Assembly (NCBI GenBank): GCA_009103225.1
Contig: RHPI01002464.1
Span: forward strand, 1 to 21,873
Origin: Chlorokybus atmophyticus
Lineage: Eukaryota > Plantae > Mesostigma and Chlorokybus algae
Length of the DNA: 21,873 nucleotides
Reading direction: 5' to 3'
The notes beneath the pieces are model-generated. The model saw nothing but the letters and a program-made list of their open reading frames with translations. It had not been told where the DNA came from and did not search any database. Position numbers and translations under genes: made by a program. Every line of letters begins with the position of its first letter. The stretch's first letter is position 1. Of the stretch, positions 904 through 20,981 are shown piece by piece.

Positions 904-940
904 GTGAGGAGGCTACTGCTGGGGATAGGAAGGAGCCTCA
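882..940 (+). other. Candidate gag-pol -1 ribosomal frameshift signal (G GAA AAC plus downstream stem/pseudoknot)
   Basis: The pol frame is -1 to gag and open from 843, overlapping gag to 903. GGAAAAC at 882-888 is in phase. 893-903 can pair with 913-925, and 905-909 TGAGG with 936-940 CCTCA. Confidence 0.6.
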
Positions 941-956
941 TGCACGGACGGATGCT

Positions 957-3900
957 GTGACATTTCCATTAAAGAAGCAAGAAGAGATGGCTTTGAACGC
1001 GCCAATGGTGGTGAGTTATGCAAACGAGGAGACAACAAAGTACTTCGGGCTTCGAGCACACATTTGCGATGACCAAGGACGATGGAGAGAGTGTAAGCTC
1101 ATGATTGATAGCGGTGCCAACAGCAACTTTATGAGTATTGATATTGCGCGGCGTTACGGTTGGCTTTCGTCATTACGAGGAGGTGAAGTGAAGCTCGCTG
1201 ATGGAGAGCCACCCTCTGGAGGTGATGGCGCTGCGTTTATGACCAAAGAGTTGTGCGTTCGCATTGGGAAGATGAAGGAGAGCATGCGATTTTGCTGCAT
1301 CACCCTACGGAACGGGTTTGATGGGATTTTGGGACTACCGTGGCTATGGCAACATAATCCAGCCATCAATTGGAGGAAGCGCGTGCTCACCATCGAGCGA
1401 AACGGTGGAGAGTCCATTCAAGCTGCATCGGACGTCATCGAGGCGCGGCACGCACAATTAGGTGGTACGACAATTGCCCAGATCTCTTATGTGCAATTGA
1501 GGAAGTTATTGTCTCCACGGAAGGCAAAGGCTGCATGGTTGTGCGTGGTGCGCGAAAACACTGCAAAGTCAGCACCGGAGCTGAGTGACGATGTTCAGAC
1601 GGCTACTATGGACCCCGAGGTGTGTAAACTTGTTAAAGAATACCAAGATATCATGGTGGACGGACTTCCATCTGGTCTACCACCTCCACGGAGCGTAGAC
1701 CACCGTGTGGAGCTGATTGAGGGCGTGCACAAGCCACCGTATCGACCCGTATACAAGTTGTCACCTTTGGAACTGGAAGAGGCCGAGAGGCAGGTGGCGG
1801 ACTTGCTGGAAAGAGGCTACATCAGGCCTAGTAAGTCCCCCTATGGTGCACCTATTTTGTTTGTACGAAAGAAGAACGGGAGCTTGCGCATGTGCGTCGA
1901 CTACCGAGCTCTCAACAACATCACGAAGAGGAATTGCTTTCCACTCCCACGTATCGACGAGTTGCTGGAGCAATTGCAAGGTGCGCAGTACTTCACAACA
2001 CTTGATCTTGCTGGAGGTTATCACCAAATTCGCATCGCGCCCGAGGATGTGGAGAAAACAGCTTTTAACACACGTTATGGGCACTACGAGTGGTTGGTCA
2101 TGTCCTTCGGACTTACGAACGCACCGGCAACATTTCAAACGCTTATGAACAGCGTTTTTGCTGACTTGATTGGTAAGGGAGTCCTCGTGTACCTCGACGA
2201 CATTTTGGTGTACGCGACAACAAAGGAGGAGCACGTGGCACTTCTACGGCGCGTGTTGCAGCGTTTGCGCGAACACAAGTTGTACGCCCAGCTACAAAAG
2301 TGCAAATTCTTGCTTCGAGAGGTGGAGTACCTAGGCCACATTGTGTCGCATGAAGGCATCAAGCCGGACCCCAACAAAGTGCAGGTGGTGCGCGAGTGGG
2401 CTGCCCCGACCAATGTAAAGGAGGTGATGTCCTTTTTAGGCCTTGCGGGGTATTATCGCAAGTTTATCATGGGGTTTTCGCGCATAGCTGCTCCCTTGAC
2501 TACCCTACTCAAGAAGGGAAAGCATTGGAGCTGGTCAGCAACAGAGGAACATGCATTTGCTGCGTTGAAGAAGGCGCTGACGGAGGCACCAGTCCTGGCT
2601 CACCCCAACATGGAAAAGACATTTATTTTGGCTTGCGACGCGTCCGACACAGCCGTAGGAGCTGTTTTGCAGCAAGACCATGGCAACGGCCTTCAACCAG
2701 TAGCATTCTTCAGCAAGAAGATGAGTGGTGCGGAGCTGAATTACCCCGTGCACGAGAAGGAACTTTTAGCGCAAGTCATGGCGCTACGACAATGGCGTTG
2801 TTTTTTGGAAGGCAAAAAGTTCGTGCTTGAGACGGATCACTCTCCACTGAGGTACTTACAAACACAACCTCATCTGAGTCGCAGACAAGCTCGATGGCTT
2901 GAGTTCTTTCAACTTTTTGACTTCGATATCAAGTACAAGCCCGGTACGTCAAATGGTGTTGCTGACGCGCTGAGCCGGCTTAATGCAATTGAGGCACTCG
3001 CTCAAGTGCAGCCCGAGTGGACCGACCAGATTCGGCAAGTGCTTCGTGAAGACACGGAGGGTATGAAAGTGTTGCAAGAGCTGGAAAATACAGCTACGGA
3101 CACAAGTGGGCACTGGTCAATGCGCGACGGGCTGCTGTGGCACCATGGGCGCTTGTACATCCCCAACGTCGCGCATATCCGTGTGAAGTTGCTGAAGGAA
3201 GCTCATGACGTGCCCATTGCTGGTCACCAAGGGTTGGAAAGGACTTTGGCAAGCTTAAAACAGCGTTTTTACTGGCGAGAGATGCATCGCGATGTGCGCG
3301 ACTACGTGGCGTTGTGCGACGCATGCCAAAGGGTGAAGGCAAGCAACCAAAAGCCAGGTGGGTTGCTGCAACCTCTCCCTGTGCCATTGTCCAAGTGGGA
3401 GCAAGTTACCATGGACTTTATCACGGGGCTACCAAAGACAAAAGAAGGGTACGACGCTATACTTGTGTTCGTCGATAAAACCAGCAAAATGGTACGCTTG
3501 GCACCGTGTAGTGAGTCTTGCACGGCACCGGAGGCAGCACGCTTGTTCGTGAAGCATGTATTTCGTTCTCATGGATTACCACGAAGCATTGTGAGTGATC
3601 GCGACCCGCGCTTTACAAGTAAGTTTTGGGAGGCGCTGCATAGTGCACTGGGTACCACACTGAAGTTTAGCACGGCATTCCACCCGCAAACTGATGGGCA
3701 AACGGAGCGGGCCAACCGTGTGATCGAGGACATGCTGCGTTGCTACGTTAACGCGCGACAAGACAATTGGGAGGAGCTGCTTGAGTTGGTTGAGTTTGCG
3801 ATCAACAACCACCACAATGCAAGCACAGGTGTCACTCCCTTCCTTATGAACTACGGGCAACATCCATTGACACCGTTGACGGCATGGACACCGCGACGAC

Positions 3901-4490
3901 ATGACGTGCGTGTGGAGGCAGCTAATGACTTCCTTACAAAGTGCGCGGACATTAACAAGGCAGCTAGGGATGCGTTATTGGTGGCACAAAATCGGCAGAA
4001 GCAATACGCGGACGCGCATCGCCGACACCTCACGTTTCAGGAAGGCGACATTGTGTTACTCTCCGCGAAGCACGTCCAGGTTCGTACGGGAGTTCGCAAG
4101 TTGAATGAACGCTGGTTGGGACCATTTAAGGTCAGCAAAGTTATCTCGGACGTGGCGTACAAGTTGGAGCTACCCGACACCATGCGTGTGCACCCCGTTT
4201 TTCACGTCTCCCTTCTGAAAGCATATCGAGGACAACCGCCAGAAAGGCCACCCCCCGAAGTTGGCACGGACGGTGAACCCGAGTGGGAGGTAGAAGACAT
4301 CCTTGGTGAGAAGTTTGTGCATGGCGTACGCAAGTTCTTAGTGAAATGGAAGGGCTATCCGTTGCATGAAGCATCCTGGGAGCCAGAGGCACACTTGACT
4401 AATGCTCAAGACGTTGTGCGTGCCTATCTCGCTCGACGACAACCTCGCGAGCTTCGAGGACGAAGCTCACCTGGGGGGGGAGGAGTGTAA
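957..4490 (+). CDS. pol: Pol polyprotein, copy A: aspartic protease, reverse transcriptase, RNase H, integrase, chromodomain (intact; probably expressed as Gag-Pol from ~885)
   Basis: LMIDSGANSNF (PR); PYRP..., CVDYRALN, YLDD (RT); ACDASD, TDHSPL (RH); HDVPIAGH...CDAC, MDFI, SDRD, TERAN (IN); GPFKV (GPY/F); WEVEDIL...FLVKWKGY...SWEP (chromodomain). Confidence 0.98.
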   Translation: MTFPLKKQEEMALNAPMVVSYANEETTKYFGLRAHICDDQGRWRECKLMIDSGANSNFMSIDIARRYGWLSSLRGGEVKLADGEPPSGGDGAAFMTKELCVRIGKMKESMRFCCITLRNGFDGILGLPWLWQHNPAINWRKRVLTIERNGGESIQAASDVIEARHAQLGGTTIAQISYVQLRKLLSPRKAKAAWLCVVRENTAKSAPELSDDVQTATMDPEVCKLVKEYQDIMVDGLPSGLPPPRSVDHRVELIEGVHKPPYRPVYKLSPLELEEAERQVADLLERGYIRPSKSPYGAPILFVRKKNGSLRMCVDYRALNNITKRNCFPLPRIDELLEQLQGAQYFTTLDLAGGYHQIRIAPEDVEKTAFNTRYGHYEWLVMSFGLTNAPATFQTLMNSVFADLIGKGVLVYLDDILVYATTKEEHVALLRRVLQRLREHKLYAQLQKCKFLLREVEYLGHIVSHEGIKPDPNKVQVVREWAAPTNVKEVMSFLGLAGYYRKFIMGFSRIAAPLTTLLKKGKHWSWSATEEHAFAALKKALTEAPVLAHPNMEKTFILACDASDTAVGAVLQQDHGNGLQPVAFFSKKMSGAELNYPVHEKELLAQVMALRQWRCFLEGKKFVLETDHSPLRYLQTQPHLSRRQARWLEFFQLFDFDIKYKPGTSNGVADALSRLNAIEALAQVQPEWTDQIRQVLREDTEGMKVLQELENTATDTSGHWSMRDGLLWHHGRLYIPNVAHIRVKLLKEAHDVPIAGHQGLERTLASLKQRFYWREMHRDVRDYVALCDACQRVKASNQKPGGLLQPLPVPLSKWEQVTMDFITGLPKTKEGYDAILVFVDKTSKMVRLAPCSESCTAPEAARLFVKHVFRSHGLPRSIVSDRDPRFTSKFWEALHSALGTTLKFSTAFHPQTDGQTERANRVIEDMLRCYVNARQDNWEELLELVEFAINNHHNASTGVTPFLMNYGQHPLTPLTAWTPRRHDVRVEAANDFLTKCADINKAARDALLVAQNRQKQYADAHRRHLTFQEGDIVLLSAKHVQVRTGVRKLNERWLGPFKVSKVISDVAYKLELPDTMRVHPVFHVSLLKAYRGQPPERPPPEVGTDGEPEWEVEDILGEKFVHGVRKFLVKWKGYPLHEASWEPEAHLTNAQDVVRAYLARRQPRELRGRSSPGGGGV
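4473..4485 (+). other. Polypurine tract, copy A
   Basis: GGGGGGGGAGGAG directly before the TG of the LTR. Confidence 0.93.
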
Positions 4491-4689
4491 CAGTCAAAGC
4501 CAAATTCTGTGATTTTCATGGCCGTTTTAGGCCTTATTTGTAAGGTACATGTTGTTAATGACTTGTGGCGGATATCGGCGAGTTATGAGTCTGCCGCGGA
4601 TATCGACCGGGGCCCCAAGACCAGTCCGGAAGGTGCCAGAAAACGGAGGGCCAGTCGAGAAGGGCTCGACCAGATTTCTGGAAGGGCCT
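4486..4689 (+). repeat. 3' LTR of copy A (first 204 bp only)
   Basis: Starts TGTAACAG and is nearly identical to the reverse complement of 16073-16276 and 21450-21653. Confidence 0.95.
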
Positions 4690-5032
4690 NNNNNNNNNNN
4701 NNNNNNNNNNNNNNNNNNNNNNNNNNNNNNNNNNNNNNNNNNNNNNNNNNNNNNNNNNNNNNNNNNNNNNNNNNNNNNNNNNNNNNNNNNNNNNNNNNNN
4801 NNNNNNNNNNNNNNNNNNNNNNNNNNNNNNNNNNNNNNNNNNNNNNNNNNNNNNNNNNNNNNNNNNNNNNNNNNNNNNNNNNNNNNNNNNNNNNNNNNNN
4901 NNNNNNNNNNNNNNNNNNNNNNNNNNNNNNNNNNNNNNNNNNNNNNNNNNNNNNNNNNNNNNNNNNNNNNNNNNNNNNNNNNNNNNNNNNNNNNNNNNNN
5001 NNNNNNNNNNNNNNNNNNNNNNNNNNNNNNNN
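4690..5032. other. Assembly gap (343 N)
   Basis: Run of N. True length is unknown, so adjacency of the two sides is not proven by this sequence. Confidence 1.
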
Positions 5033-6494
5033 AACCCAAACGCATTTGGCCGTGACGTGGCAACCTCGGCCGTCAGCAACCCTTCCCCAAGCAAGTGGAA
5101 GATTGGCAACGAGGTAAGCACTGTGTGACACTGTGACACTGTGTGTATGTGTGTAACGGATTGTTCTTCTGTGGACAGCATTTGCGAGATGCCGTCGTTG
5201 AAATCATAAACGGCCACTGGGTAGAGAGCCACGTTTATCCCAAGGAGGACACTATTCGTAACGTCATGTGTCAGGTGCTGTGAATGCTTCATGACCGCAC
5301 TGCACCGTGACACTGACCAACCTGCCCGTGACAGGTAGTTGGCTTCGACCATGACGATGAGGCCAATGCGGCCAAGTTCTATGAGGTGTACTGGACTCCC
5401 AAGGAGTGCCCCTTCCACTGGAGTGTCGCCCTGAAGAAAGCTACGCAGCTCCGGTCTAAGAACGTCACCAAGATCAAGCATGTCCTTCAGAAGGAGTACA
5501 AGTGGACACTGTTTAACAGCAACAAGCGCAAGTGAGTTGGGTCCCTCACCACCATGTCTGCTATGCAACACTGCCTTCTTACTCAGCCTCCATACACACG
5601 TACTCATCTCGCCTATTGTAACCGATTCAATCAGGCATATCGACGCCCTAATGGACCCCGAGACCCAAAAAGCCCAGATGCGCAACGCGCTCCAAAGTAA
5701 GTCACAGGCACTATTCTAGCCTGGTGCAGGCGCAACTTGAACTACCTATTTCGTGACCAATGCCTTATCGGTATGAATGTCGCAGACAAGTCATGGCGGA
5801 GATTTGAGGTGACCGACACTGCAGACTCGGAGCGAAGGAGATACATCCATGAATGGGGCAATCCCATAATCTGGCAAATGATCGTGCAATGCTGGTCTTA
5901 CGCCGTCACTACACCTGGTCGCCGGCAGCTGACAGTCAACCACCTCGCATACCTGTTGCTTACGGTGAGCACTCTGAACTCCATCATTAGCAATTCAGGA
6001 ATGCTGTAGCCCCAAACTACAGGCTTGCAGACGCGTTGCAGTGAATAGTGGCTTTCGATGCCACTAAGACATGCCTGTAAACTACGCAGGTGGAGCGCAT
6101 CCTAAAGGGCAAGGATGGAGACCCTCTCCTAGCTGCCAGCATAAACACACATGAAGAGTACCTCAGCGAAATCAACACCACGATCATGTCAATGAAGCGG
6201 GAGATGAGGCAACGGTACGCAGCCCTCCAGCCATTTACCCTTGTGAAACGCCGCACTGCATCTCGTGTCGAATACCTGAAAGATCCCAGTCGGCGCCGGC
6301 CGCAAGAGACAGCAGCTCGTGACCCGCTCGCTGAGGCAGAAGCGGCATTTGATTGGCTGGCACAACCGTTTGAGGAGGAAGAGCAAGCTCCGGCGTCTCC
6401 TCCACAGACCCCAGCGCGTGGTGCTTTGTTCCGTAAGAGCAAAGCGATGATGGAGAGGAGCTGTAGCGCAGTTGGTAGTCCGTTTAGCTGGTAG
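5033..6494 (+). CDS. Spliced gene of unknown function, 5'-partial, ~361 aa visible; predicted exons 5033-5113, 5179-5274, 5335-5531, 5635-5696, 5720-5964, 6090-6494
   Basis: GT..AG introns of 65, 60, 103, 23(?) and 125 nt (donors gtaagc, gtgctg, gtgagt, gtaagt, gtgagc; branch-like TAAC/CTGAC in several). Phases 0,0,2,1,0 join into one stop-free frame ending at TAG 6492-6494. Intron 4 is uncertain. Confidence 0.72.
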
Positions 6495-6824
6495 TGTATA
6501 TAGCTACAAGGCTCTTGTGACTGAGTGTTGTGCATCTTAAACCAGCTCAGTCAATCGTCATTATGCTCATGCACATCAATACTTGCATCCCTATGATATA
6601 CAACAGAACTGCATTCGAGTCACATAATCGAACTACAAGCCTTGGCAAGTGACTGAGAGACACTGTACACATTTCAGGTACATGTACACAGCACAAGCAC
6701 ATAACAATGCTGGAAGTCAGTGACAGTCGCGTGTAGTCAAGCTATGCAACTACATATGACGACAGTTAGGCATTAGTCACCTTCAGTTCTTAAAGAATGC
6801 CTTATTCTGTCGATAATTACCTAG

Positions 6825-7142
6825 TTGGTGCTTGTAAATTAGGCTTAGTCGCCTGCGCTGGACTGGTCTGTAACCTGCAGGTGCCTGTCACATAGGCTGA
6901 GTCATCTAAGTAAGACTGATGTGTAACTTACAGGTGCCCGTTGATTAGTTGTAGTCACCTAATAAGGCCTGATGTGTAACTAACCGTTGCCTGTAAATTA
7001 CACAAAGTCATTTGTTAAGGCCTGGTGTGTGACTAACAGGCGCCTGTTAATTATATAAAGTCACCTGTTAAGGCCTGATAGGTAACTATCAGGCGCCTGT
7101 TAGTTAGGCATAGTCAACTGTTAAGACTAAATTGTAACAAAA
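6825..7142. repeat. Diverged tandem repeat, 6 units of exactly 53 bp
   Basis: Units start at 6825, 6878, 6931, 6984, 7037 and 7090. Recurring blocks are caggYgcctgt, agtcacct, taaggcctg and tgtaact; a partial unit lies near 6764-6782. Confidence 0.88.
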
Positions 7143-7288
7143 AGGGCCTTACAGTAATGATAGTTACTATTAGTTCCCTGTATCAAGATTACAGGTGGCC
7201 TGAGCCACGACAGTCTAAATTAGCGTCCTTAGGTGCACGGCCGTTGCCAATATTTAGTCGGCCGGCAGGGAAAACATATTGCGACGAT

Positions 7289-7387
7289 CTTCTTGTGGAT
7301 GAGAAGCGCTTTTATCTCCACACACCATGTGCTGTAGTTGTCGATGTCCAACTTTGCGATCAACCCCTTGTCGTAGCTAGTTTCCAT
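7289..7387 (-). pseudogene. gag: Copia gag N-terminal fragment
   Basis: METSYDKGLIAKLDIDNYSTWCVEIKALLIHKK aligns with MATNYDKVTVEPLDADNYNTWSVRKKMLLVHKN at 10584. Confidence 0.85.
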
Positions 7388-7491
7388 CTTCGCCGCGCCT
7401 GCTCCTCTCTGGCAGATGGCACCCAAGACTCACAAGCTATCAAGGTGTGGTACTACAAATGTCTGCTTCTATCACACCCTTGACACGTGGT

Positions 7492-7505
7492 GTGGGCCCA
7501 TAACC
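7492..7505 (-). other. Primer binding site for tRNA-iMet 5' half (Copia 1)
   Basis: GGTTATGGGCCCAC directly after the LTR-terminal CA; complementary to the anticodon arm of plant-type initiator tRNA. Confidence 0.85.
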
Positions 7506-7628
7506 TGTCCAAGAAGCTAGCAACACATGTTGCTAAGGCTGATGCTGGACATGCACACATACAACTCTACAGCCGCGAGAGCATACACAAGGGCAACACT
7601 TTCACTTGATTACAACTCAAGAATGGGC

Positions 7629-7635
7629 TTTTATA
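7629..7635 (-). promoter_or_regulatory. TATA box of Copia 1 LTR
   Basis: TATAAAA in the same GCGGG...GCCC context as in the Copia 2 LTRs. Confidence 0.65.
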
Positions 7636-7851
7636 CCCGCTGCAGATACACCTGTCAACTCTCGAAGCAACTGTGTACGCTACACGTTACCTATCATCAT
7701 GAACTTTAAATGCATGACGTAGCTAACTTCAAGACCTTTCTAACAAGCTAAGCCACGCGCCAATCGGTGCAGTAACCACCGATTTATGAGTGTTCTTCTA
7801 CGCGCCTGGAAGTCGCGCCTGCAACCTTCTCTTCGACTGGAGTCTCCGCCT

Positions 7852-7888
7852 AGAACCTTCTTGAATGGAGTCCGCGCCTAGAACCTTC
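7852..7888. promoter_or_regulatory. Heat-shock-element-like sites in Copia 1 U3
   Basis: aGAAccTTCttGAAt at 7852-7866 is a perfect three-unit HSE consensus; a second GAAccTTC lies at 7881-7888. Confidence 0.55.
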
Positions 7889-8215
7889 TGGCGGCCAAAC
7901 CTTTGGAGTTGACGCCTATGCCTATATAAAGGGCAAGGCTGACCGGATATAGAATTATCCTCAACAAAGGCTGACCGGATATAGAAATATCATCAACAGA
8001 TGAGTCCCAGAAGGATGCCACTAAAGAAGTGGCATCTTTCTGCCCAACAAAAAGCATCTGAACGCTGTTGGTGCGCACAAGTGGTCGCACATTGACTACT
8101 AATCAGACCACGGCTCATTGCACGGTTCCCTCTCTACAAGGACCTAGCTGCAGTCTAGGAGCAATACCAGGTGGCCATTGGAGTAGTGGAGTTCCACATG
8201 TTTCGCCAACAACAA

Positions 8216-9180
8216 GGCATCAGAGTGTTGGAACTGTTTCGAGGTATATGTAGTGGCCTCGCCGCTGTCCTCAACACCGGCGCGACGGTCACCAAGTACC
8301 TCTACTGCGACCCTGATCCACACGCACAGATTGCCCAAAGCCACCACTTGCACCGCCTAAACGAGTGCTACCCGCGGCAGCTGCCACTATTAGCAGTGCA
8401 AGGTAGTCTGAAGGCACTGCCACAGGACATTCATTTAATCACTACGGAGCACCTCCAAGCTGAGGGCAACATCGACCTGCTGATAGTATGATGGGAGTGT
8501 CACGAACACTTTAGAGCAGGCAGAGGCCAAGGACTCTCTGATCTTCGCTCGTAACTGCTGTTGGAGCTGACGCGCGTTATCAAACTCTTGCAGAGCAACC
8601 AGACTTTTAGGCCTCTGGGGTACATCATCGAGTTAGTGCACTTCGAGGACGATAAGCGTCATCACGTGGCCATCAGCTTTCGATAGGTGTGCTCCTTGTT
8701 GGGGCATCCTTATAAAATCAACACAGCGCATCATGGATCTCGTGCTCACCGTATTCGCGCCAAATGAACTAACCTGGCCACAGCGGAGGATTTTTTCGCT
8801 GTAAAGCATATGCATAGAAGTCGTCCACGCGATCTAACCGTTGACGCCATCCAGGACCCTGGGGGCACAGCACAATCGGTCACCCGACACGATCACCAGC
8901 ACTTTTACCAATGCAACAAGTCTGGGTAACCACGTCGTGCGCTCCCCACTCTGGTGTCTTACCCAGGATAATACGCATTCCGCGACTACGGCGAAGGCAT
9001 GGTGTTGGATTTCAATAAAGGCCAACTGGAGGAACCCAACACACATGAGCGCAAACGCGCCATGAGATTCTCTCTAGGCAATATCACAGGTTCCACGCTG
9101 ACCGACAATTAGCAACGTCAGCTGTTGGGACGCGCCATGGACCAGAACAGCATGGTATGGTCATTGGGAATATGCTTTGC
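8216..9180 (+). pseudogene. DNMT3-like C5 cytosine DNA methyltransferase catalytic domain (7 in-frame stops, no frameshift)
   Basis: One reading frame gives motif I IRVLELFRGICSG, motif IV region GNIDLLIV*WEC (Cys codon 8498-8500), motif VI GYIIELV, motif VIII HPYKINTAHHGSRAHRIRAK*TNL and motifs IX/X EEPNTHERKRAMRF...QRQLLGRAMD. These parallel DNMT3 [54 protein letters not shown] and EMERVFGF...RQRLLGRSW. Confidence 0.9.
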
Positions 9181-9385
9181 TCACAAGGACCGCCATGTGT
9201 CCTTTAAAAAACTCAAACACCTGGCGGGGGGTGGAGTCGATCGCGTGCAAGAGACTAAAGCGGCACACACCGCCCTCGAAATCGCCCACATGAAGGAGCA
9301 GGCAGCAGTCACTGTGGAGGACATTCCAGTGGTCGCCAAGGCTACCTCCCATGCCATTGAACCGCTGGCTACAGGTAAGACATGA

Positions 9386-10002
9386 GAACAACTCGAGGCT
9401 CTCCTCAACAAGTGGAGGAGGCAGTTCAGCTTTCAGCGGGATAGAGCTTAGCAGCTGTTCAGTTTACCAGATGGACATCGAGTTGGTGGACACTGAACCA
9501 GTGTTTCGACAACCGTACAGATTTTTAAAGTTGGAAGAAATCTTGGTGGAGCAGAGGTGCAAGACTCTATTAGATGCAGGCCTGATCAAGGAGTCCACAT
9601 CGGACTTTGCGGCCGCGACCGCCTTGCCCCTAAAGAAGGATTCAGCAGGCAACTGAACAGACCGGCGTATGTGCGGTGACTACCGCCCCCTCAACAGCAA
9701 GACAAGTATCCAATGCCTACTGCAGAATGTATCTTTGATGATGTAAGAAGGATTCAGCAGGCAACTGAACAGACCGGCGTATGTGCGGTGACTACCGCCC
9801 CCTCAACAGCAAGACAAGTATCCAATGCCTACTGCAGAATGTATCTTTGATGATGTAAGAGACTGTACCGTCTTTAATATCCTGGAAATGTGCCAAGGGT
9901 ACAACCAGATCGCCATCAAAGAGGAGGACAATCACAAGACCTCCTTCTTGGGCAACCGGCAGCTATACCAGTGGAAGGTCATGCCCTTCGAGCTGAAGAA
10001 TG
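9386..10002 (+). pseudogene. Gypsy reverse transcriptase, N-terminal part (frameshifts, stop, internal duplication)
   Basis: EQLEALLNKW; EPVFRQPYR; KKDSAGN*TDRRMCGDYRPLNS; KYPMPT; QGYNQI...KTSF; WKVMPFELKN. Confidence 0.9.
9633..9860. repeat. Perfect 112-bp tandem duplication
   Basis: 9633-9744 equals 9745-9856; AAGA recurs at 9633, 9745 and 9857. Confidence 0.93.
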
Positions 10003-10058
10003 TGTTGAGGATATTCTTGTATCCGGTCAGCTTGCCTTGTGGATAAGAGTAGCCGCGA

Positions 10059-10160
10059 GAAAATTCAGGCGCGAGAAGGTTCCAGTCGAGAAAGGTCCAG
10101 GCGACGACTTCAGTCGAGAAGGTTCCAGGCGCGGAGTCGAGTCCGGAGTCTAGAGACTTC
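10059..10160. promoter_or_regulatory. GAAnnTTC (HSE-like) repeat array in Copia 2 U3
   Basis: Perfect GAAnnTTC at 10059, 10075 and 10118; degenerate units at 10090, 10104 and 10153. Each is followed by CAGGCG or CAGTCG. Confidence 0.5.
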
Positions 10161-10333
10161 CAGGCGCTGTAGAAGAAACGTTGTAGCTTAGTGGTTACGT
10201 CATTATATGGCGCGTGTCATAGCTTGTTGGAAAGCTCTTGAAAGTAGCTACGTGGTGCAACTTAGAGCGCAGGAATCGGTTGAGTGTAGAAGTCGTGGTG
10301 GCTTCTAGAGTAGACAGGTGCAGAACTGGCGGG

Positions 10334-10340
10334 TATAAAA
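10334..10340 (+). promoter_or_regulatory. TATA box of Copia 2 5' LTR (copy at 12646-12652)
   Basis: TATAAAA within GCGGG-TATAAAAG-CCCGC; context conserved in related LTRs. Confidence 0.7.
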
Positions 10341-10471
10341 GCCCGCGGTGTGACTTTGTTGTAATCCTTAGAAAGCCTTTTGGATCAACCTTGTGTGTAT
10401 GCTCTGGTAGAGTGTGTGTACTTGTGCTTGTACCAACTCCATGCATGGTCAGTAGTGTCCGAATCTCAACA

Positions 10472-10485
10472 GGTTATGGGCCCAC
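10472..10485 (+). other. Primer binding site for tRNA-iMet 5' half (Copia 2)
   Basis: GGTTATGGGCCCAC directly after the LTR CA. Confidence 0.88.
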
Positions 10486-10583
10486 ACTACGCTGGTCTAG
10501 CATGTGTTTAGAGTCGTGAGAACGGTAGTAGGCTAGGCAAGGGTTCTAGCTGAGTCTTGTGAGGTGTGGTTGAGTCCGAGAAG

Positions 10584-11732
10584 ATGGCAACCAACTACGA
10601 CAAGGTGACCGTGGAGCCTTTGGACGCGGACAACTACAACACATGGAGCGTGCGCAAGAAGATGTTGCTGGTACATAAAAACTTGTGGGAGTGGGTGGAC
10701 CCGGAGGCTGACCCTATGTCTACAAGGCAGAGCTCGGTGTTCAAGCAGCAAAGTGGGAGAGCGCTTGCCCTGATCGGACTAAACGTGAAGGATCATCACT
10801 TGGTGTTGGTGGACGGCTGCAAGACGGCACGAGAAGCTTGGGAGAAGTTGGCATCGCACTTCAAGGCGAAGAATAGCGCGAGGAAGGTGCAGCTGAAGAG
10901 AGAGCTTGCTGGGTTGAAGAAGCAAGGAGCAGCGGAGCCTATTACCAAGTATGTGTCGCGTGCACGAGAGTTGCAGAAGGACCTTCAAGGTGTTGGCTAT
11001 GAGGTGAAGGAGTCCGAGTTGGTGTGGCAAGTGCTGTCTGGATTGCCTGAAAACTATGACACGGTGATCACGATCTTGGAGGGCTTGGAGGCAAAACCCA
11101 CGGTGGACGAGGTGGTTCAAAAATTGCTGCAGGTGGAGTCAAGGCTAGCGAAGAAGCATGAGGAATGCCCGGAGGCGACGGCTTTCTCAGCGACTTCAGG
11201 AAGAGGTACTGATCGTTTTCAGCATGGGTCTGGGCGTTTCAGTGGTGATGGTGGCGGTGGTAGTGGTGGTGGAGCGTCCAGGAGTGACAGGGTCTGCTAC
11301 TATTGCGGGAAGAAGGGTCACATTAGGGTGCATTGCTCGATGAGGAAGCAGCACGAAGAGGAGCGTGGTGGAGAGAAGCATCATGCCATGACGGGACGTG
11401 TTCGAGAGACGCCTATTGCCTTTCATGCAACAACGGATGGTGAGGCAGCTGGTTGGGTGCTGGACTCGAGTTGCACGAGGCATATGACGGGTGATCGTGA
11501 GAAGTTGGCAAAGTACAAGGTCTTGAAGAAGCCAATCAAGGTGAAGTTTGGCAAGACGGAGGTGCTCGCGGTTGGTGTAGGAGAAGCGAAGATCCTATCT
11601 CAAGTTGGAGGAAGGACGAGGCAAGTATTTTTGAGAGAGGTGATGTATGTCCCAGGGCTAGAGGTTAGCCTATTCTCTGTGCGCATCGCGGCGAGAGTTG
11701 GTGCTGTGACAGTGTTTAGTGGGGACATATGA
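10584..11732 (+). CDS. gag: Copia Gag-protease; TGA 11730-11732 is probably a nonsense change in a frame that continues to 12260
   Basis: LDADNYNTW; Gag core AREAWEKL...RKVQLKREL...; knuckle CYYCGKKGHIRVHC; protease WVLDSSCTRHM (DSG changed to DSS); VMYVPGL..SLFSV. Confidence 0.92.
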   Translation: MATNYDKVTVEPLDADNYNTWSVRKKMLLVHKNLWEWVDPEADPMSTRQSSVFKQQSGRALALIGLNVKDHHLVLVDGCKTAREAWEKLASHFKAKNSARKVQLKRELAGLKKQGAAEPITKYVSRARELQKDLQGVGYEVKESELVWQVLSGLPENYDTVITILEGLEAKPTVDEVVQKLLQVESRLAKKHEECPEATAFSATSGRGTDRFQHGSGRFSGDGGGGSGGGASRSDRVCYYCGKKGHIRVHCSMRKQHEEERGGEKHHAMTGRVRETPIAFHATTDGEAAGWVLDSSCTRHMTGDREKLAKYKVLKKPIKVKFGKTEVLAVGVGEAKILSQVGGRTRQVFLREVMYVPGLEVSLFSVRIAARVGAVTVFSGDI

Positions 11733-12260
11733 AGGGTAGTGCCGCGTGGTGTCACAGAGTTGGTTGGCATCAACGTTGGAGGGCTCTACATCATTAAGGA
11801 TGTCAAGGGTGCGGAGATGCACAAGAAAACCAAGGTGGAGGTGTCCAAGTCAGCACCGATTGTAAAGAAGATGAAGAAGAAGGCGAAGGTTGTGCCTGTT
11901 GCTGAAAAGGGAGCGCGAGCTCAAGAGAAGGTGACCAGGAGCGTGTCACAGGCGAGTGGTGGAGTGATTCCACGTGTGGAGGTTGCTGAGGGTTTCAAAA
12001 AGGTTGAAGATGCAGTTCCTGAGCCCGTGGGAGCTATAAAAGGCGTTGGCATCATCAAGGACAAGAAGGAGAAGCATGGTGGTGGTGTTGTGCAGGACGT
12101 TGCCAAAAGTGAGCACGTGGGAGCACATGCAAATGACAATGAGAGTTTTAACAAGGGTGAGCAAGTGAAGAGCTTCAAGGAGGCGCTCATGAGAGGTGCG
12201 GGAAGTGTCTTCAAGATGGTTGGAAGATCAAAGGATGGCGTGGGAGTTCGTCGCGCATGA
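11733..12260 (+). pseudogene. In-frame C-terminal extension of Copia 2 Gag-PR (GLY motif, then K/V/G-rich region)
   Basis: Same frame as 10584-11732 past one TGA. GGLYII is the usual pre-integrase motif, but no HHCC, DDE or RT motif follows. QVKSFKEAL resembles the pre-RT EPKSFKEA motif. Confidence 0.65.
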
Positions 12261-12301
12261 GTACGCAAGGAGTTGGCATTGACGGTGTTGAAGGCCAAGC
12301 T

Positions 12302-12314
12302 GCCCGCGTGGGAG
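12302..12314 (+). other. Atypical PPT-position motif of Copia 2
   Basis: GCCCGCGTGGGAG directly before the 3' LTR; identical to the motif in Copia 3. Confidence 0.75.
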
Positions 12315-12778
12315 TGTTGAGGATATTCTTGTATCCGGTCAGCTTGCCTTGTGGATAAGAATAGCCGCGAGAAAATTCAGGCGCGAGAAGGTTCCAGTCG
12401 AGAAAGGTCCAGGCGAGGACTTCAGTCGAGAAGGTTCCAGGCGCGGAGTCGAGTCCGGAGTCTAGAGACTTCCAGGCGCTGTAGAAGAAACGTTGTAGCT
12501 TAGTGGTTACGTTATTATATGGCGCGTGTCATAGCTTGTTGGAAAGCTCTTGAAAGTAGCTACGTGGTGCAACTTAGAGCGCAGGAATCGGTTGAGTGTA
12601 GAAGTCGTGGTGGCTTCTAGAGTAGACAGGTGCAGAACTGGCGGGTATAAAAGCCCGCGGTGTGACTTTGTTGTAATCCTTAGAAAGCCTTTTGGATCAA
12701 CCTTGTGTGTATGCTCTGGTAGAGTGTGTGTACTTGTACCAACTCCATGCATGGTCAGTAGTGTCCGAATCTCAATCA
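12315..12778 (+). repeat. 3' LTR of Copia 2 (464 bp)
   Basis: Differs from the 5' LTR by 3 substitutions, a 6-bp indel and an extra T near the end (hand count). Confidence 0.95.
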
Positions 12779-12782
12779 AATG

Positions 12783-13433
12783 CTCCTGCCAAGTTTCAGC
12801 GCATCATGAACAAAGCCCTTAAGGGATTGGACTTCACACGGTGCTACATCGACGACATCCTCATCTTCAGTCGCAGTAATGAGGAGCATCTCAGGCACAT
12901 CGGAGGAGGTGCTACAGAGACTGAAGGAAGTAGGGATGACGGTGCACCCCGACAAGTGCACCTTTTTCGCCCACAATGTACCCTACCCAAAGCACATGAT
13001 TGTGCCCCGCGGTGTGTATGTACAGCAGGCCAAGGTGGAGGCACTGGTAGCCATCCCTGCCCCCCCACATCTCACGCAACTGCGTGCTTTCCTCGGCCAT
13101 ACCAACTACTACAGACGGTTCGTCAAGGACTTCGCAAAGAATCGCGCAGCCACTCGATGAACTGCTGAGGAAGGACACGGAGTTCCTGCGGAAGGAGGCA
13201 CAACAAGAGGCCTTCGAGGAGTTGAAGCTTTGACTCACCACAGCTCCCATTCTTTAGCGACATGACTACAATAGGTTATTCATCCTGCACACGGATTTGG
13301 GCAAGCTCGGCATGAGAGCAGTGCTCGTGCAGCACGATGACAACAAGAAGGAGCGCGTAGCGTCGTATGCCAGCCGCAGCAACAATAGCGCTGAGACCAA
13401 CTACAGCAGCTATGAGGCGGAGTGTCTCGCCGT
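12783..13433 (+). pseudogene. Gypsy RT C-terminal part and RNase H N-terminal part (frameshifts, stops)
   Basis: APAKFQRIM; CYIDDILIFS; HPDKC; QLRAFLG..NYYRRFV; FILHTD; YASRSNNSAETNYSSYEAECLAV. Confidence 0.92.
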
Positions 13434-13901
13434 TGTGGAGAATATAGCATGATTTGCAGTATTCTCTACATGTACAGCATATGACACTTATGTGCTATTG
13501 TCCAGTCAGCTTAGCTAGCCCTATTGTAGCTTATTAAGCTGGTACTTAAGCTACTCACAGACTGCAGTTGCATGTATAGGCTGCAGGCACTTAGGACTGG
13601 TACATTGTGGTCTAGTGTTTGGTAAGACCCAGATTGAGGGCCCAGAGCCGACAGGCCGCGGATTATTGAGTTAGGTCACTTCTATGGTCACTTCGTTGGC
13701 GGTGTAGCTCTGCTCTTACCACTGTGCTGTATATGCTTGTTGTGCATGGTTGCATGCAGCAACTATAGTCAACAGGTTATGGGCCCACATCTACGTATGT
13801 AGAGCTAGCTACTGTGAGAGAGTGTTCTCCTATGTGTGTGAGGTTGTTGGAGTTGTTAGCTAAGAGTCTGAGAGATACAGCGGACAAGCAGGTGGACTGT
13901 G
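13434..13901 (+). mobile_element. Truncated Copia element 4: 5' LTR (13434-13774), PBS (13775-13788) and leader
   Basis: TGTGGA...GTCAACA followed directly by GGTTATGGGCCCAC. Starts where RNase H homology stops. The left boundary is uncertain by a few bp. Confidence 0.75.
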
Positions 13902-14296
13902 TGTTGAAAAGCAAGCATGCAAGCGAAGAGGGCAAGCAATGACACATAGGAGAAGGCAACACACTTCCCAAATTATTACTAACAGACCGCGGGGTTATGT
14001 ACCCGCCAGTTAGTACACAGTTTGTACACACTGCTGGTCTACATGCAACAGCGTCCGATACACTTAACCATATCCTACGCTGTATCATGTGCCACGTAGT
14101 TAACGTGACAAGCTTTTTAACAAGCTATGCCACGTCCTATAAGACTGAGTATCCTAGGAGATATGACGATTCTCCTAGGACCCTTCTCTGCAGTCCGCGC
14201 CAGGACCTTCATGTCCGGAGTCTTCAAGGTCCTCCCATCGAGGTCCCTTCTCTTGTATACAGGGCAGGCTGACCGGATGTAAGTATATCTTCAACA
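13902..14296 (-). repeat. 3' LTR of Copia 3 (395 bp)
   Basis: Perfect 7-bp terminal inverted repeat; blocks shared with the Copia 1 and Copia 2 LTRs. Confidence 0.88.
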
Positions 14297-15020
14297 CTCC
14301 CACGCGGGCAGCTTGGCCTTTAATACTTGGTCCTGCTCACGCACATATGCCGAGTCCCGTGCAACATGCCTTGAACTTTAGCGGTGACAGTGGCTTTGTC
14401 ATGAAGTCCGCGAGCATGTCTTCTGTATTGCAATACTAAAACTCAACCTCCTTGCGTGTGACTCTGTTTAGCACAAAGCGATGGATGACATCAATGTGCT
14501 TTGTCCTTGTCGAGGCAATGGGGTGCTTCAGCAACTTGATGGCGCCTTGGTTGTCGCATTTGATCGTGATACACGCCATTGGGTGCTCCAGATCTGCCAT
14601 CAGCTTGCGAAGCCATAATGCCTGCTTCACTGCAGCGGATGCTGCCATGTACTCCGCTTCCAAAGTAGATGCTGCTGTTGTTGGTTGCAGCCTGCTGTTC
14701 CAGCTCACCACGCCTCCATTTAGTTTGAAGACGTAAGCAATAGTGGACCTCCTGCTGTCAAGGTCATCTGCAAAGTCTGCGTCGCAGTAGCCCTCCATCT
14801 TTATGCTTCCGCAACCAAACTTGATGCCAACACTTGTGCTTTGAGCCGCGTAGCGCAATACTCCCTTCGCGGCACGCCAATGCTCCATGCTTGGTGCAGA
14901 CATGTAGCGCGCAAGCACTCCAACTGCATGTGCGATGTCGGGTCTTGTGCACGCTGCCAAGTAGAGCATGCTCCTAACAAGCTCACCATATGGGCCATAA
15001 AGTGGCCAGCTTCCTTCCAA
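13902..15020 (-). mobile_element. 5'-truncated Copia element 3 (RT C-terminus, RNase H, PPT motif, 3' LTR)
   Basis: On the - strand: RT/RH remnant, then GCCCGCGTGGGAG (14297-14309), then an LTR with TGTTGAA...TTCAACA ends. Confidence 0.92.
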
Positions 15021-15023
15021 CAT
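14337..15023 (-). pseudogene. Copia RT C-terminus and RNase H
   Basis: PYGELVRSMLYL...TRPDI; YCDADFADDLDSRRST; STLEAEY; CDNQGAI; TKHID; then TAG (14436-14438) and YCNTEDMLADFMTKPL...GLGICA*. Confidence 0.93.
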
Positions 15024-15606
15024 GAGTGCACGAGAGAAAGATCGTGTTAGTCAACGCACCCGCCACTATTGGTGGGCGGATGACAAGGTGTATCGCCGCG
15101 TCCAGGACGAGGACAAGGAGGTGCCAACACCAGCCACACGCGAGGGCATCATCGCTGCCCTCCACACTGAGCTTGAACACGTTGATGTCAAGCGTACCGT
15201 CAGCCTGGTAAGGCCGCAATATTGGTGGTATGGGCTGTCCAAACAGGTGCAGGGGATCGTCAATCGCTGCCAACAGTATGACATGGTACATGTCAGCCTC
15301 AACACACGCGGCGCCACCTTGCACCCTCTCCCCATCTCTGGTCTGTTCTATCGCTGGGGGCTCGACATCTTGGGAGACTTGGCACCCTCCGCACGGGGCA
15401 ACCGCTACATCCCGGTCACGATCGAGCACTTCTTCAAATGGGTGGAGCTGGTGCCACTACCCGACAAGAGCAGCAGGGGGGTGTCTCAAGCCTTCCTCTC
15501 CCATGTCCTCAGCTGGTTCGGCAGCTGCGCTGAGGTCATCACCGACCAGGGCACTGAGTTCAGAGGGGAGTTCGCCACCATGCTGGACAGATGCTCCATC
15601 GATCAT
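15004..15606 (+). pseudogene. Gypsy integrase fragment, cut by copy B
   Basis: LHTELEH...YWW...C (decayed HHCC); LHPLP; RWGLDILG; ITDQGTEF; ends at SIDH, where the LTR of copy B begins. Confidence 0.9.
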
Positions 15607-16276
15607 TGTGACGGTGCTCGTGCCTTGTCACCTGTGAGTTGGTCCAATCCACAACCCTCTCACCAAGACACGGTATTCACACCGGAACCTTGCCCCCTCT
15701 GCCATGCACACACACGCGCCCCGCCACTCGCGTACGCACGCGCATGCGCTCGAAGCTACACCGACTTGTGTAGCGCCCTGGATCGTCACACAAGCAAGCA
15801 CACACCGGTGGCCACACGCTAGCAACCCCTGCTAACCACCACCAAGCTTGCACACCAGAAACTAGGGAGCTAAAGGTTGTATTGCAAATTGTAGAATGTC
15901 ACTTTTATACCTACCAGTCTGCACATGCTACTGTCTAGACGATTCTAGCACTAGACGGAACTAGAAGCTAAGATATTCTTGCAGAATCTTGTAGTACACT
16001 TCTAGACCTTTCCAACGCACCAAAGATCTCCTAATGTGCTGCTCATATGGTCAAGTTATACTACTTGGCGCCAGGCCCTTCCAGAAATCTGGTCGAGCCC
16101 TTCTCGACTGGCCCTCCGTTTTCTGGCACCTTCCGGACTGGTCTTGGGGCCCCGGTCGATATCCGCGGCAGACTCATAACTCGCCGATATCCGCCACAAG
16201 TCATAAACAACATGTACTTTACAAATAAGGCCTAAAACGGCCATGAAAATCACAGAATTTGGCCTTGACTGTTACA
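15607..16276 (-). repeat. 3' LTR of copy B (670 bp)
   Basis: TGTAAC...GTCACA on the - strand; PPT at 16277-16289; left flank ATCAT (15602-15606) is a candidate TSD half. Confidence 0.97.
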
Positions 16277-19200
16277 CTCCTCCCCCCCCAGGTGAGCTTC
16301 GTCCTCGAAGCTCGCGAGGTTGTCGTCGAGCAAGATAGGCGCGCACAACGTCTTGAGCATTAGTCAAGTGTGCCTCTGGCTCCCAGGATGCTTCATGCAA
16401 CGGATAGCCCCTCCATTTCACTAAGAACTTGCGTACGCCATGCACAAACTTCTCACCAAGGATGTCTTCTACCTCCCACTCGGGTTCACCGTCTGTGCCA
16501 ACTTCGGGGGGTGGCCTTTCTGGCGGTTGTCCTCGATATGCTTTTAGAAGGGAGACGTGGAAAACGGGGTGCACACGCATGGTGTCGGGTAGCTCCAACT
16601 TGTACGCCACGTCCGAGATAACTTTGCTGACCTTAAATGGTCCCAACCAGCGTTCATTCAGCTTGCGAACTCCCGTACGCACCTGGACGTGCTTCGCGGA
16701 GAGTAACACAATGTCGCCTTCCTGAAACGTGAGGTGTCGGCGATGCGCGTCCGCGTACTGCTTCTGCCGATTTTGTGCCACCAATAACGCATCCCTAGCT
16801 GCCTTGTTAATGTCCGCGCACTTTGTAAGGAAGTCATTAGCTGCCTCCACACGCACGTCATGTCGTCGCGGTGTCCATGCCGTCAACGGTGTCAATGGAT
16901 GTTGCCCGTAGTTCATAAGGAAGGGAGTGACACCTGTGCTTGCATTGTGGTGGTTGTTGATCGCAAACTCAACCAACTCAAGCAGCTCCTCCCAATTGTC
17001 TTGTCGCGCGTTAACGTAGCAACGCAGCATGTCCTCGATCACACGGTTGGCCCGCTCCGTTTGCCCATCAGTTTGCGGGTGGAATGCCGTGCTAAACTTC
17101 AGTGTGGTACCCAGTGCACTATGCAGCGCCTCCCAAAACTTACTTGTAAAGCGCGGGTCGCGATCACTCACAATGCTTCGTGGTAATCCATGAGAACGAA
17201 ATACATGCTTCACGAACAAGCGTGCTGCCTCCGGTGCCGTGCAAGACTCACTACACGGTGCCAAGCGTACCATTTTGCTGGTTTTATCGACGAACACAAG
17301 TATAGCGTCGTACCCTTCTTTTGTCTTTGGTAGCCCCGTGATAAAGTCCATGGTAACTTGCTCCCACTTGGACAATGGCACAGGGAGAGGTTGCAGCAAC
17401 CCACCTGGCTTTTGGTTGCTTGCCTTCACCCTTTGGCATGCGTCGCACAACGCCACGTAGTCGCGCACATCGCGATGCATCTCTCGCCAGTAAAAACGCT
17501 GTTTTAAGCTTGCCAAAGTCCTTTCCAACCCTTGGTGACCAGCAATGGGCACGTCATGAGCTTCCTTCAGCAACTTCACACGGATATGCGCGACGTTGGG
17601 GATGTACAAGCGCCCATGGTGCCACAGCAGCCCGTCGCGCATTGACCAGTGCCCACTTGTGTCCGTAGCTGTATTTTCCAGCTCTTGCAACACTTTCATA
17701 CCCTCCGTGTCTTCACGAAGCACGTGCCGAATCTGGTCGGTCCACTCGGGCTGCACTTGAGCGAGTGCCTCAATTGCATTAAGCCGGCTCAGCGCGTCAG
17801 CAACACCATTTGACGTACCGGGCTTGTACTTGATATCGAAGTCAAAAAGTTGAAAGAACTCAAGCCATCGAGCTTGTCTGCGACTCAGATGAGGTTGTGT
17901 TTGTAAGTACCTCAGTGGAGAGTGATCCGTCTCAAGCACGAACTTTTTGCCTTCCAAAAAACAACGCCATTGTCGTAGCGCCATGACTTGCGCTAAAAGT
18001 TCCTTCTCGTGCACGGGGTAATTCAGCTCCGCACCACTCATCTTTTTGCTGAAGAATGCTACTGGTTGAAGGCCGTTGCCATGGTCTTGCTGCAAAACAG
18101 CTCCTACGGCTGTGTCGGACGCGTCGCAAGCCAAAATAAATGTCTTTTCCATGTTGGGGTGAGCCAGGACTGGTGCCTCCGTCAGCGCCTTCTTCAACGC
18201 AGCAAATGCATGTTCCTCTGTTGCTGACCAGCTCCAATGCTTTCCCTATTTGAGTAGGGTAGTCAAGGGAGCAGCTATGCGCGAAAACCCCATGATAAAC
18301 TTGCGATAATACCCCGCAAGGCCTAAAAAGGACATCACCTCCTTTACATTGGTCGGGGCAGCCCACTCGCGCACCACCTGCACTTTGTTGGGGTCCGGCT
18401 TGATGCCTTCATGCGACACAATGTGGCCTAGGTACTCCACCTCTCGAAGCAAGAATTTGCACTTCTGTAGCTGGGCGTACAACTTGTGTTCGCGCAAACG
18501 CTGCAACACGCGCCGTAGAAGTGCCACGTGCTCCTCCTTTGTTGTCGCGTACACCAAAATGTCGTCGAGGTACACGAGGACTCCCTTACCAATCAAGTCA
18601 GCAAAAACGCTGTTCATAAGCGTTTGAAATGTTGCCGGTGCGTTCGTAAGTCCGAAGGACATGACCAACCACTCGTAGTGCCCATAACGTGTGTTAAAAG
18701 CTGTTTTCTCCACATCCTCGGGCGCGATGCGAATTTGGTGATAACCTCCAGCAAGATCAAGTGTTGTGAAGTACTGCGCACCTTGCAATTGCTCCAGCAA
18801 CTCGTCGATACGTGGGAGTGGAAAGCAATTCCTCTTCGTGATGTTGTTGAGAGCTCGGTAGTCGACGCACATGCGCAAGCTCCCGTTCTTCTTTCGTACA
18901 AACAAAATAGGTGCACCATAGGGGGACTTACTAGGCCTGATGTAGCCTCTTTCCAGCAAGTCCGCCACCTGCCTCTCGGCCTCTTCCAGTTCCAAAGGTG
19001 ACAACTTGTATACGGGTCGATACGGTGGCTTGTGCACGCCCTCAATCAGCTCCACACGGTGGTCTACGCTCCGTGGAGGTGGTAGACCAGATGGAAGTCC
19101 GTCCACCATGATATCTTGGTATTCTTTAACAAGTTTACACACCTCGGGGTCCATAGTAGCCGTCTGAACATCGTCACTCAGCTCCGGTGCTGACTTTGCA

Positions 19201-19805
19201 GTGTTTTCGCGCACCACGCACAACCATGCAGCCTTTGCCTTCCGTGGAGACAATAACTTCCTCAATTGCACATAAGAGATCTGGGCAATTGTCGTACCAC
19301 CTAATTGTGCGTGCCGCGCCTCGATGACGTCCGATGCAGCTTGAATGGACTCTCCACCGTTTCGCTCGATGGTGAGCACGCGCTTCCTCCAATTGATGGC
19401 TGGATTATGTTGCCATAGCCACGGTAGTCCCAAAATCCCATCAAACCCGTTCCGTAGGGTGATGCAGCAAAATCGCATGCTCTCCTTCATCTTCCCAATG
19501 CGAACGCACAACTCTTTGGTCATAAACGCAGCGCCATCACCTCCAGAGGGTGGCTCTCCATCAGCGAGCTTCACTTCACCTCCTCGTAATGACGAAAGCC
19601 AACCGTAACGCCGCGCAATATCAATACTCATAAAGTTGCTGTTGGCACCGCTATCAATCATGAGCTTACACTCTCTCCATCGTCCTTGGTCATCGCAAAT
19701 GTGTGCTCGAAGCCCGAAGTACTTTGTTGTCTCCTCGTTTGCATAACTCACCACCATTGGCGCGTTCAAAGCCATCTCTTCTTGCTTCTTTAATGGAAAT
19801 GTCAC
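16272..19805 (-). pseudogene. pol: Pol, copy B, split by one in-frame TAG at 18246-18248
   Basis: The 519-aa and 641-aa ORFs are in frame and match copy A Pol; AAG AAG in A reads AAA TAG in B. Confidence 0.96.
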
Positions 19806-19858
19806 AGCATCCGTCCGTGCATGAGGCTCCTTCCTATCCCCAGCAGTAGCCTCCTCAC

Positions 19859-20887: not shown

Positions 20888-20967
20888 CTCCACTAACACA
20901 CTACACTCCGCTTCCGAATGAAAAGTGTAAACGCCCACACACTTCCTCTCTCACCTTCGTAAACCGT

Positions 20968-20979
20968 GCTCCGATACCA
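20968..20979 (-). other. Primer binding site for tRNA-iMet 3' end (chromovirus)
   Basis: TGGTATCGGAGC, 2 nt after the LTR CA; differs from the plant iMet PBS TGGTATCAGAGC by one base, which allows a G:U pair. Confidence 0.88.
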
Positions 20980-20981
20980 GT

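Follow-up and report, generated by a model that had tools for sequence, protein, structure and literature searches.

The contig RHPI01002464.1 of Chlorokybus atmophyticus (assembly GCA_009103225.1) was analysed over 21,873 nucleotides of the forward strand, and this whole stretch is called the window. It was found to contain the remains of a DNMT3-type C5 cytosine methyltransferase (DNMT) domain followed by the Pol domains of a Ty3/Gypsy retrotransposon, and this copy of the DNMT element is dead. The remains are very probably those of an old Ty3/Gypsy copy from a DNMT3-carrying lineage, in which intact members are ordered gag, aspartic protease (PR), DNMT, reverse transcriptase (RT), RNase H (RH) and integrase (IN), with or without a PHD finger at the end. 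The Ty3/Gypsy traits present in the window are RT, RH and an H2C2/DDE integrase in Pol order, all on the plus strand. A first-pass annotation made from the letters alone had proposed a Gypsy element with a DNMT in pol and the order DNMT-RT-RH-IN. This order proved to be native to the family, as seen from intact polyproteins and from contigs that bridge the DNMT and the RT. The kind is already known since 2018 from KnitGypsy-Dnmt3 of Klebsormidium nitens (de Mendoza et al. 2018, Nat Commun 9:1341, PMC5890265); the window holds a further member and adds no new principle. The Klebsormidium Gypsy precedent named in the annotation was thus correct, and the novelty, which it had made dependent on host and clade, is limited by this publication for a streptophyte alga.

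The methyltransferase domain

The DNMT domain was located at 8201-9208 (+), where it is complete and inactivated. The read-through translation was made for 8171-9382 in the frame of base 8171 (+), with X placed at each stop, and the domain was read in a single frame without any frameshift. Seven in-frame stops fall in the domain (8489, 8552, 8684, 8765, 8927, 8969 and 9110), and the eighth stop of this frame, at 9383, is within the linker. The read-through was compared with a local hidden Markov model (HMM) of length 364, made from the DNMT domains of 61 retrotransposon-borne relatives. It scored 324 bits (E 4e-101, one target) over profile positions 11-351. The tblastn search of intact relatives against the window gave one high-scoring segment pair in one frame, covering about 330 residues at 33-40% identity with a best E of 1e-58. 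All six motif blocks (I, IV, VI, VIII, IX and X) were colinear with the family profile. These results bear out the claim of a whole domain with its motifs in order, and the strings quoted for it were all located in the read-through of 8171-9382: IRVLELFRGI, SRAHRIR..*TNL (in full SRAHRIRAK*TNL) and QRQLLGRAM.

The inactivation is seen in the motifs themselves. The motif IV glycine, the motif VIII tryptophan and the motif IX serine are stop codons, the motif IV serine is changed to phenylalanine, and ENV reads ELV (Asn to Leu). Together with the frameshifts and the insertions described below, these stops agree with the earlier statement that the copy is dead.

The assignment to the DNMT3 type was examined by profile, structure and sequence searches. 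The longest stop-free piece (8171-8488, 106 aa) was searched with HMMER against 1.84 billion representative proteins and gave 394 matches at E<=1e-3, among which the long matches were mostly retrotransposon polyproteins. Against the PDB the same piece matched DNMT3A/B/C alone and weakly (E 0.05-1.7), over motif I and the residues leading to motif IV. The Pfam family PF00145 was matched by 30 of 38 relatives, with a best E of 5.6e-13. The 38-relative profile searched against the PDB gave DNMT3A at 3e-18 and DNMT3B/C at about 1e-15, followed by DRM (3e-10), M.HhaI (3e-7) and DNMT2 (5e-4). DNMT3A aligns with this profile in three colinear stretches, from which it follows that the motifs are unpermuted, in contrast to DRM. 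The AlphaFold model of residues 1005-1345 of the intact relative P0243 had a pLDDT of 92.9 and a pTM of 0.91, and in the fold search with this model the 50 best PDB matches were all DNMT3A/B/C (E about 1e-20, target TM about 0.8). The window domain is thereby confirmed as a DNMT3-type C5 cytosine methyltransferase catalytic domain, in accordance with the DNMT3-like label given to it at first.

Mammalian DNMT3A/3B (PDB 2qrv, 6w89, 6u8p) are therefore the top profile and fold match of the transposon-borne family, with which they share the colinear motifs I, IV, VI, VIII, IX and X, the R-x-R...W-x-N-L pattern and the LLG-R/N wording. The differences are an identity of about 21-23%, the position of the domain within a retrotransposon polyprotein and the lack of PWWP and ADD. 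No match to PWWP or ADD was obtained in any of the polyproteins scanned with Pfam, and the absence of these reader domains is expected of a captured catalytic domain. A further difference concerns motif IV. The proline before the catalytic cysteine of this motif is near-universal. In about half of the transposon-borne domains it is replaced by glutamate, unlike in mammalian DNMT3A/3B. Among the relatives P0001-P0314, GWECQ is found in about half and GWPCQ in the others (window 8492-8530), and each variant is present in both of the domain orders described in the next section.

Domain order among the relatives

Two orders were distinguished: type A is RT-RH-DNMT-IN-PHD, and type B is gag-PR-DNMT-RT-RH-IN(-PHD). 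The majority of the 314 relatives retrieved are type A, 112 of these being full length, and in the first search all long relatives had this order. Type B was revealed by a region-restricted search started from an intact relative. It occurs as single open reading frames (ORFs) of 2300-2400 residues in metagenomes (P0243, P0246, P0247, P0256, P0274), and also in Closterium sp. NIES-53, a streptophyte alga with four such proteins, including P0280 and P0254. The Pfam order (CCHC-)PR-DNMT-RT-RH(-IN) was read in P0243, P0247, P0254 and P0255. In intact type-B relatives a CCHC gag is present, and about 150-250 residues separate the PR from the DNMT downstream of it. The proteins P0144 and P0122 were considered as further examples of a DNMT before RT or RH and were rejected as internally deleted or chimeric gene models, in which about 110-150 DNMT residues are fused directly to mid-RT or RH.

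The window was found by tblastn to be colinear with P0243 over the DNMT, RT, RH and IN. The DNMT residues 1014-1336 of P0243 align with window 8213-9187 at 40% identity and the RT residues 1432-1584 with 9444-10004 at 36%. The RT-RH residues 1571-1801 align with 12743-13437 at 43-50% in three frames, and the IN residues 1926-2132 with 15004-15621 at 47%, all on the plus strand. The spacer between DNMT and RT measures 96 aa in P0243 (1336 to 1432) against about 80 codons in the window. The DNMT tree was built by maximum likelihood with a quick IQ-TREE search from 65 domains, transposon-borne sequences exclusively. It placed the window on the type-B side of the split with an SH-aLRT (Shimodaira-Hasegawa-like approximate likelihood ratio test) support of 100%; P0276 is an apparent exception placed on the type-A side. 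In the integrase tree types A and B were not resolved, and no type can be assigned from it to the window integrase.

Paralogous copies in the same organism supported the same junction. The low-coverage sequencing run X1 was the only one holding the stretch, with a contig identical to 7990-8185, and probably comes from the same organism as the window. The Logan contigs of X1 include 210 that are 80-99% alike over the stretch and represent paralogous copies; some of them bridge 9035-9348, 9239-9432 and 9290-9617, that is, the DNMT, the linker and the RT. The contig over 9290-9617 has a k-mer depth of 71 compared to about 3 for unique contigs. Between it and the window copy there is a 1-nt indel at 9433, which coincides with the frame change at about 9420-9443. 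No contig matching at >=80% was found in runs X2 and X3, which the same study obtained from a different organism. The colinearity with P0243, the spacer length, the DNMT tree and the bridging contigs establish that the DNMT-RT linkage is a property of the family. The possibility, raised with the first-pass annotation, that other copies would show the methyltransferase unlinked to RT was thus not borne out by the X1 contigs.

The linker itself, with the pre-RT segment, extends over 9209-9443 (+) and was delimited from the spacing in P0243 and the bridging contigs. It contains the stop at 9383 and the frame change. The piece 9113-9382, which holds motif X and the linker, matched no homologous protein in a collection that lacks host transposon proteins and is limited by a length window, and such a blank is uninformative. 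The annotation had also described a linker with no protease motif. None is seen in the window, and the cause is the loss of the 5' part of this copy, given that the PR of intact relatives lies upstream of the DNMT.

Alternative explanations

Several points weigh against the assignment to this lineage. The gag, the PR, the terminal repeats and both ends of the element are missing, so that the element cannot be delimited in the window, where neither gag nor aspartic protease nor terminal repeats with a target-site duplication were found. The stop-free DNMT pieces of the window yield zero Pfam matches, even at E<=10, when all eight (13-106 aa, very short) are scanned singly; the blank was rejected as evidence against the domain, since pieces of this length are too short. 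Membership in the group of KnitGypsy-Dnmt3 was set by shared architecture and description and not by sequence comparison. Among the listed runs that hold the stretch, none is on record as RNA. To our knowledge, self-methylation has been demonstrated for no Gypsy-DNMT3. The last point concerns the integrase. Its segment at 15004-15606 is open for 200 codons, compared to 7 stops in the 340 codons of the DNMT and to several stops and frameshifts in RT-RH, and the junction at 13451-15000 is rearranged.

This contrast in decay would fit two type-B copies, one giving DNMT-RT-RH and the other, a younger one, the integrase, united by the rearrangement at 13451-15000. The junction is indeed not a clean insertion, and the Copia fragment in it is itself truncated at about 15000. 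We consider such a union unlikely. The order, strand and spacing suit a single element, the gap in the P0243 alignment between RH and IN being 125 residues. In the window integrase one Cys position of the zinc finger has also been altered by a missense change, and the absence of stops is possibly due to chance, at about 2% for a uniform rate.

The placement of the DNMT before the RT could also be a local rearrangement, in which a truncated type A copy was joined to another copy's RT. The type A order of most of the 314 relatives lends this some plausibility, and the stretch between RH and IN, conceivably the former place of the DNMT, has been replaced by foreign DNA. It is nevertheless very improbable. 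The DNMT groups with type B at full SH-aLRT support, the RT-RH shows 43-50% identity to type B against 35-45% to type A, the linker length agrees with P0243, and the junctions are common to the paralogous contigs. Finally, a processed pseudogene of a host DNMT3 lying by chance beside an unrelated Gypsy RT would fit an intronless, dead domain equally well, and yet it scarcely merits credence and is already contradicted by intact single ORFs with the identical DNMT-linker-RT order, the position of the window DNMT inside the transposon-borne type-B clade, the same junctions in many paralogous contigs and nearest relatives that are all polyproteins.

Known systems and the wider pattern

The reading of the window as a degraded type-B Gypsy-DNMT3 copy was compared with the known systems. 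Like KnitGypsy-Dnmt3, it has an intronless DNMT3-type domain in the Pol ORF of a Ty3/Gypsy element from a streptophyte alga, with an unpermuted motif order; it differs in its host, Chlorokybus, and in being dead and truncated. The text of PMC5890265 states no domain order, and the same architecture as KnitGypsy-Dnmt3 was inferred. The intact type-B element on locus L003 (ORF 10001-17059) is flanked by repeats in the DIRS-like arrangement A...B-A-B, as in PMC5890265. These are split direct repeats: A at 9368-9667 and 17465-17764, B at 17146-17442 and 18038-18334, and an outer pair at 8595-9040 and 18355-18801. No K. nitens protein was among the named matches, and of the streptophytes named there Closterium sp. 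NIES-53 alone supplied type-B relatives.

The type A elements of the green algae Haematococcus lacustris (QJQ45_013313), Monoraphidium neglectum (MNEG_11595) and Chromochloris (Cz02g39130) carry the same DNMT family at 33-39% identity to the window. They share the motifs of the window family, including GW[E/P]CQ, and their integrase is related to that of the window (37-44% identity), frequently with a C-terminal PHD finger. In type A, however, the DNMT lies between RNase H and integrase, whereas that of the window lies between the protease side and the RT, and the split between the two DNMT clades has an SH-aLRT of 100%. SymbioDIRS-Dnmt3 and SymbioLINE-DNMT of Symbiodinium (PMC5890265) are also retrotransposon-encoded C5 methyltransferases, and the Pol order varies between sub-families. 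They belong to other retrotransposon classes, the former being a DIRS element with a tyrosine recombinase and the latter a LINE, and to another host kingdom, and were acquired independently.

Later works cite "streptophytes (Gypsy-DNMT3)" (10.64898/2026.05.21.726589; PMC12344493). The literature search found no report of a Gypsy-DNMT3 for Chlorokybus and no account of two Pol architectures. The two orders with their separate DNMT clades, the related integrase often followed by PHD and the hundreds of clusters may be new. The same may be true of a sub-family whose DNMT and RT are parted by an in-frame stop. On locus L004 of this sub-family, gag-PR-DNMT (525-4832, 1435 aa) and RT-RH-IN-PHD (4860-7985, 1041 aa) are in the same frame with a single stop between them, and at least 14 protein clusters (P0257-P0270) end alike, 80-117 residues past the DNMT. 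The in-frame stop is a candidate for programmed read-through, by which the dose of DNMT relative to RT/IN would be regulated. The window stop at 9383 was considered as a conserved read-through stop of the P0260 kind and rejected, since the stop of L004 is about 45 codons further upstream of the pre-RT motif.

A broader interpretation, to which we give slightly less than an even chance, is that the Gypsy-DNMT3 elements are not confined to Klebsormidium and form one old and widespread green-algal lineage, with the DNMT3 at either PR-DNMT-RT (the window and Closterium) or RH-DNMT-IN (Haematococcus, Monoraphidium and Chromochloris), a clade for each position and a related integrase that often ends in a PHD finger. 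With Chlorokybus as the host, the PR-DNMT-RT type would reach the deepest streptophyte branch, and the two positions would go back either to an ancient capture with a later relocation of the domain or to captures made twice within the lineage. The DNMT3-carrying Gypsy lineage includes hundreds of protein clusters from algal genomes and public metagenomes, well beyond the single species of 2018. Retrotransposons bearing a silencing enzyme of the host are rare and counter-intuitive in the conflict between transposon and host. The window copy is a fossil which helps to show the lineage in a further green-algal genome and in two domain orders.

Proposed mechanism

Intact members have one ORF, or two ORFs in one frame. 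The intact relatives encode their DNMT3-type catalytic domain within Pol, between PR and RT, and keep the catalytic Cys, ENV and R-x-R. The DNMT may be released by the protease of the element or may remain joined to the RT, and would be carried in the particle or in the pre-integration complex. There it could methylate de novo the new element DNA, or the DNA around the insertion, and the insertion may gain a CG methylation state like that of gene bodies. Methylation of new copies is the mechanism proposed by de Mendoza et al. 2018 (PMC5890265). The same study showed de novo CG methylation by retrotransposon DNMTs in yeast and reported purifying selection on the DNMT domains of the K. nitens Gypsy-Dnmt3 elements. 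The mechanism is inapplicable to the window copy, which is inactive. Intact natural sequences are on hand for testing the methylation of new insertions and its sequence context.

The decay of the window copy was also considered in this connection. The observed/expected ratio of CpG is 0.61-0.84 in the DNMT element compared to 0.92-0.95 in the young chromovirus, and no clear deamination pattern was found at the stops of the DNMT element. With a depletion this mild and stops of this kind, the claim of a methylation-driven decay was dropped.

Anatomy of the window copy

The damage to the window copy comprises the loss of gag and PR, the 7 DNMT stops, the pre-RT frameshift, a 112-nt duplication in the RT, a Copia-like element nested in the RT, Copia debris in place of the junction of RH and IN, and a chromovirus inserted in the IN. 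The left bound of the DNMT element is a long terminal repeat (LTR) of a minus-strand Copia-like element at 7625-7998 (-), with a doubled start at 7966/7998. It has 68-70% identity to the LTRs of the nested element described below, in reversed orientation. Further left, 7319-7391 matches the gag start of that nested element by blastn. The stretch upstream of the DNMT at 7999-8200 (+) showed no gag or PR homology by tblastn; its assembly is supported by the X1 contig over 7990-8185, and it is possibly a remnant of the spacer between PR and DNMT. When 5033-8170 was searched by tblastn for gag and PR, the N-terminal portions of 36 relatives (18+18) gave nothing at E<1. The CCHC-knuckle signals met in this search were rejected as noise located in other elements. 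The DNMT element is 5'-truncated at or before about 8170.

The N-terminal half of the RT occupies 9444-10001 (+) and contains stops and a frameshift (tblastn with P0243 1432-1584, 36%). Within it a perfect 112-nt tandem duplication was found (9633-9744 and 9745-9856). The depth of the paralogous contigs falls across this duplication, which looks private to the window copy.

The RT is split by a nested, gag-only Copia-like LTR element at 10002-12775 (+). Its LTRs of 468 and 462 nt (10002-10469 and 12314-12775) are 98% alike. The gag ORF at 10566-11732 matches Retrotran_gag_2 and Pol_BBD, and a Lys-rich ORF of 173 aa at 11739-12260 gave no Pfam match. The nested element encodes neither RT nor IN and is non-autonomous. 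The sequences flanking 10002-12775 read MPFELKN and APAKFQRIMN and are the halves of one RT motif; the nested element is a later and clean insertion.

The C-terminal half of the RT and most of the RNase H follow at 12776-13450 (+), with two frameshifts and three stops, as read in three frames and by tblastn with P0243 1571-1801. The RT half reaches from 12776 to 13140, and the RH continues up to 13450. The end of the RNase H and the spacer between RH and IN are replaced at 13451-15000 by foreign Copia-type debris, identified by blastn to the nested LTR. The debris contains a minus-strand LTR (13983-14297) and the minus-strand C-terminus of a Copia pol (14436-15023). The motifs in the latter ORF we take to be those of a Ty1/copia RNase H; a Pfam match was not obtained for it.

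The integrase occupies 15001-15605 (+), where its H2C2 zinc finger is followed by the beginning of the DDE core, and is cut at 15606. It was identified by Pfam and by tblastn at 47%, the segment 15022-15606 matching Integrase_H2C2 at 3.5e-10 and rve at 1.5e-5. The cut is due to a young chromovirus inserted in the integrase at 15606-21873 (-), with LTRs at 15606-16496 and 20981-21873 that are 98.5% alike. Since this chromovirus extends past the window end, the C-terminus of the integrase, any PHD finger and the 3' repeats are outside the window.

Neighbourhood

The window is a nest of transposons. An intron-rich neighbouring gene had been set against the intronless domain in the first-pass annotation, and this was mistaken: 957-4490 is an intact chromovirus pol of 1177 aa (RT-RH-IN-SH3-chromodomain), the remaining window also consists of transposons, and no intron-rich host gene was found in it. 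The chromovirus copies at 1-4689 and 16073-20761 are inverted with respect to each other and 99.4% identical. A run of N at 4690-5032 stands directly after the plus-strand chromovirus copy, where an assembly artefact is possible. To the left of the DNMT element a degenerate tandem array was observed at 6827-7125 (6827-7019 against 6933-7125, 69% identity), which is probably part of the minus-strand Copia-like element.

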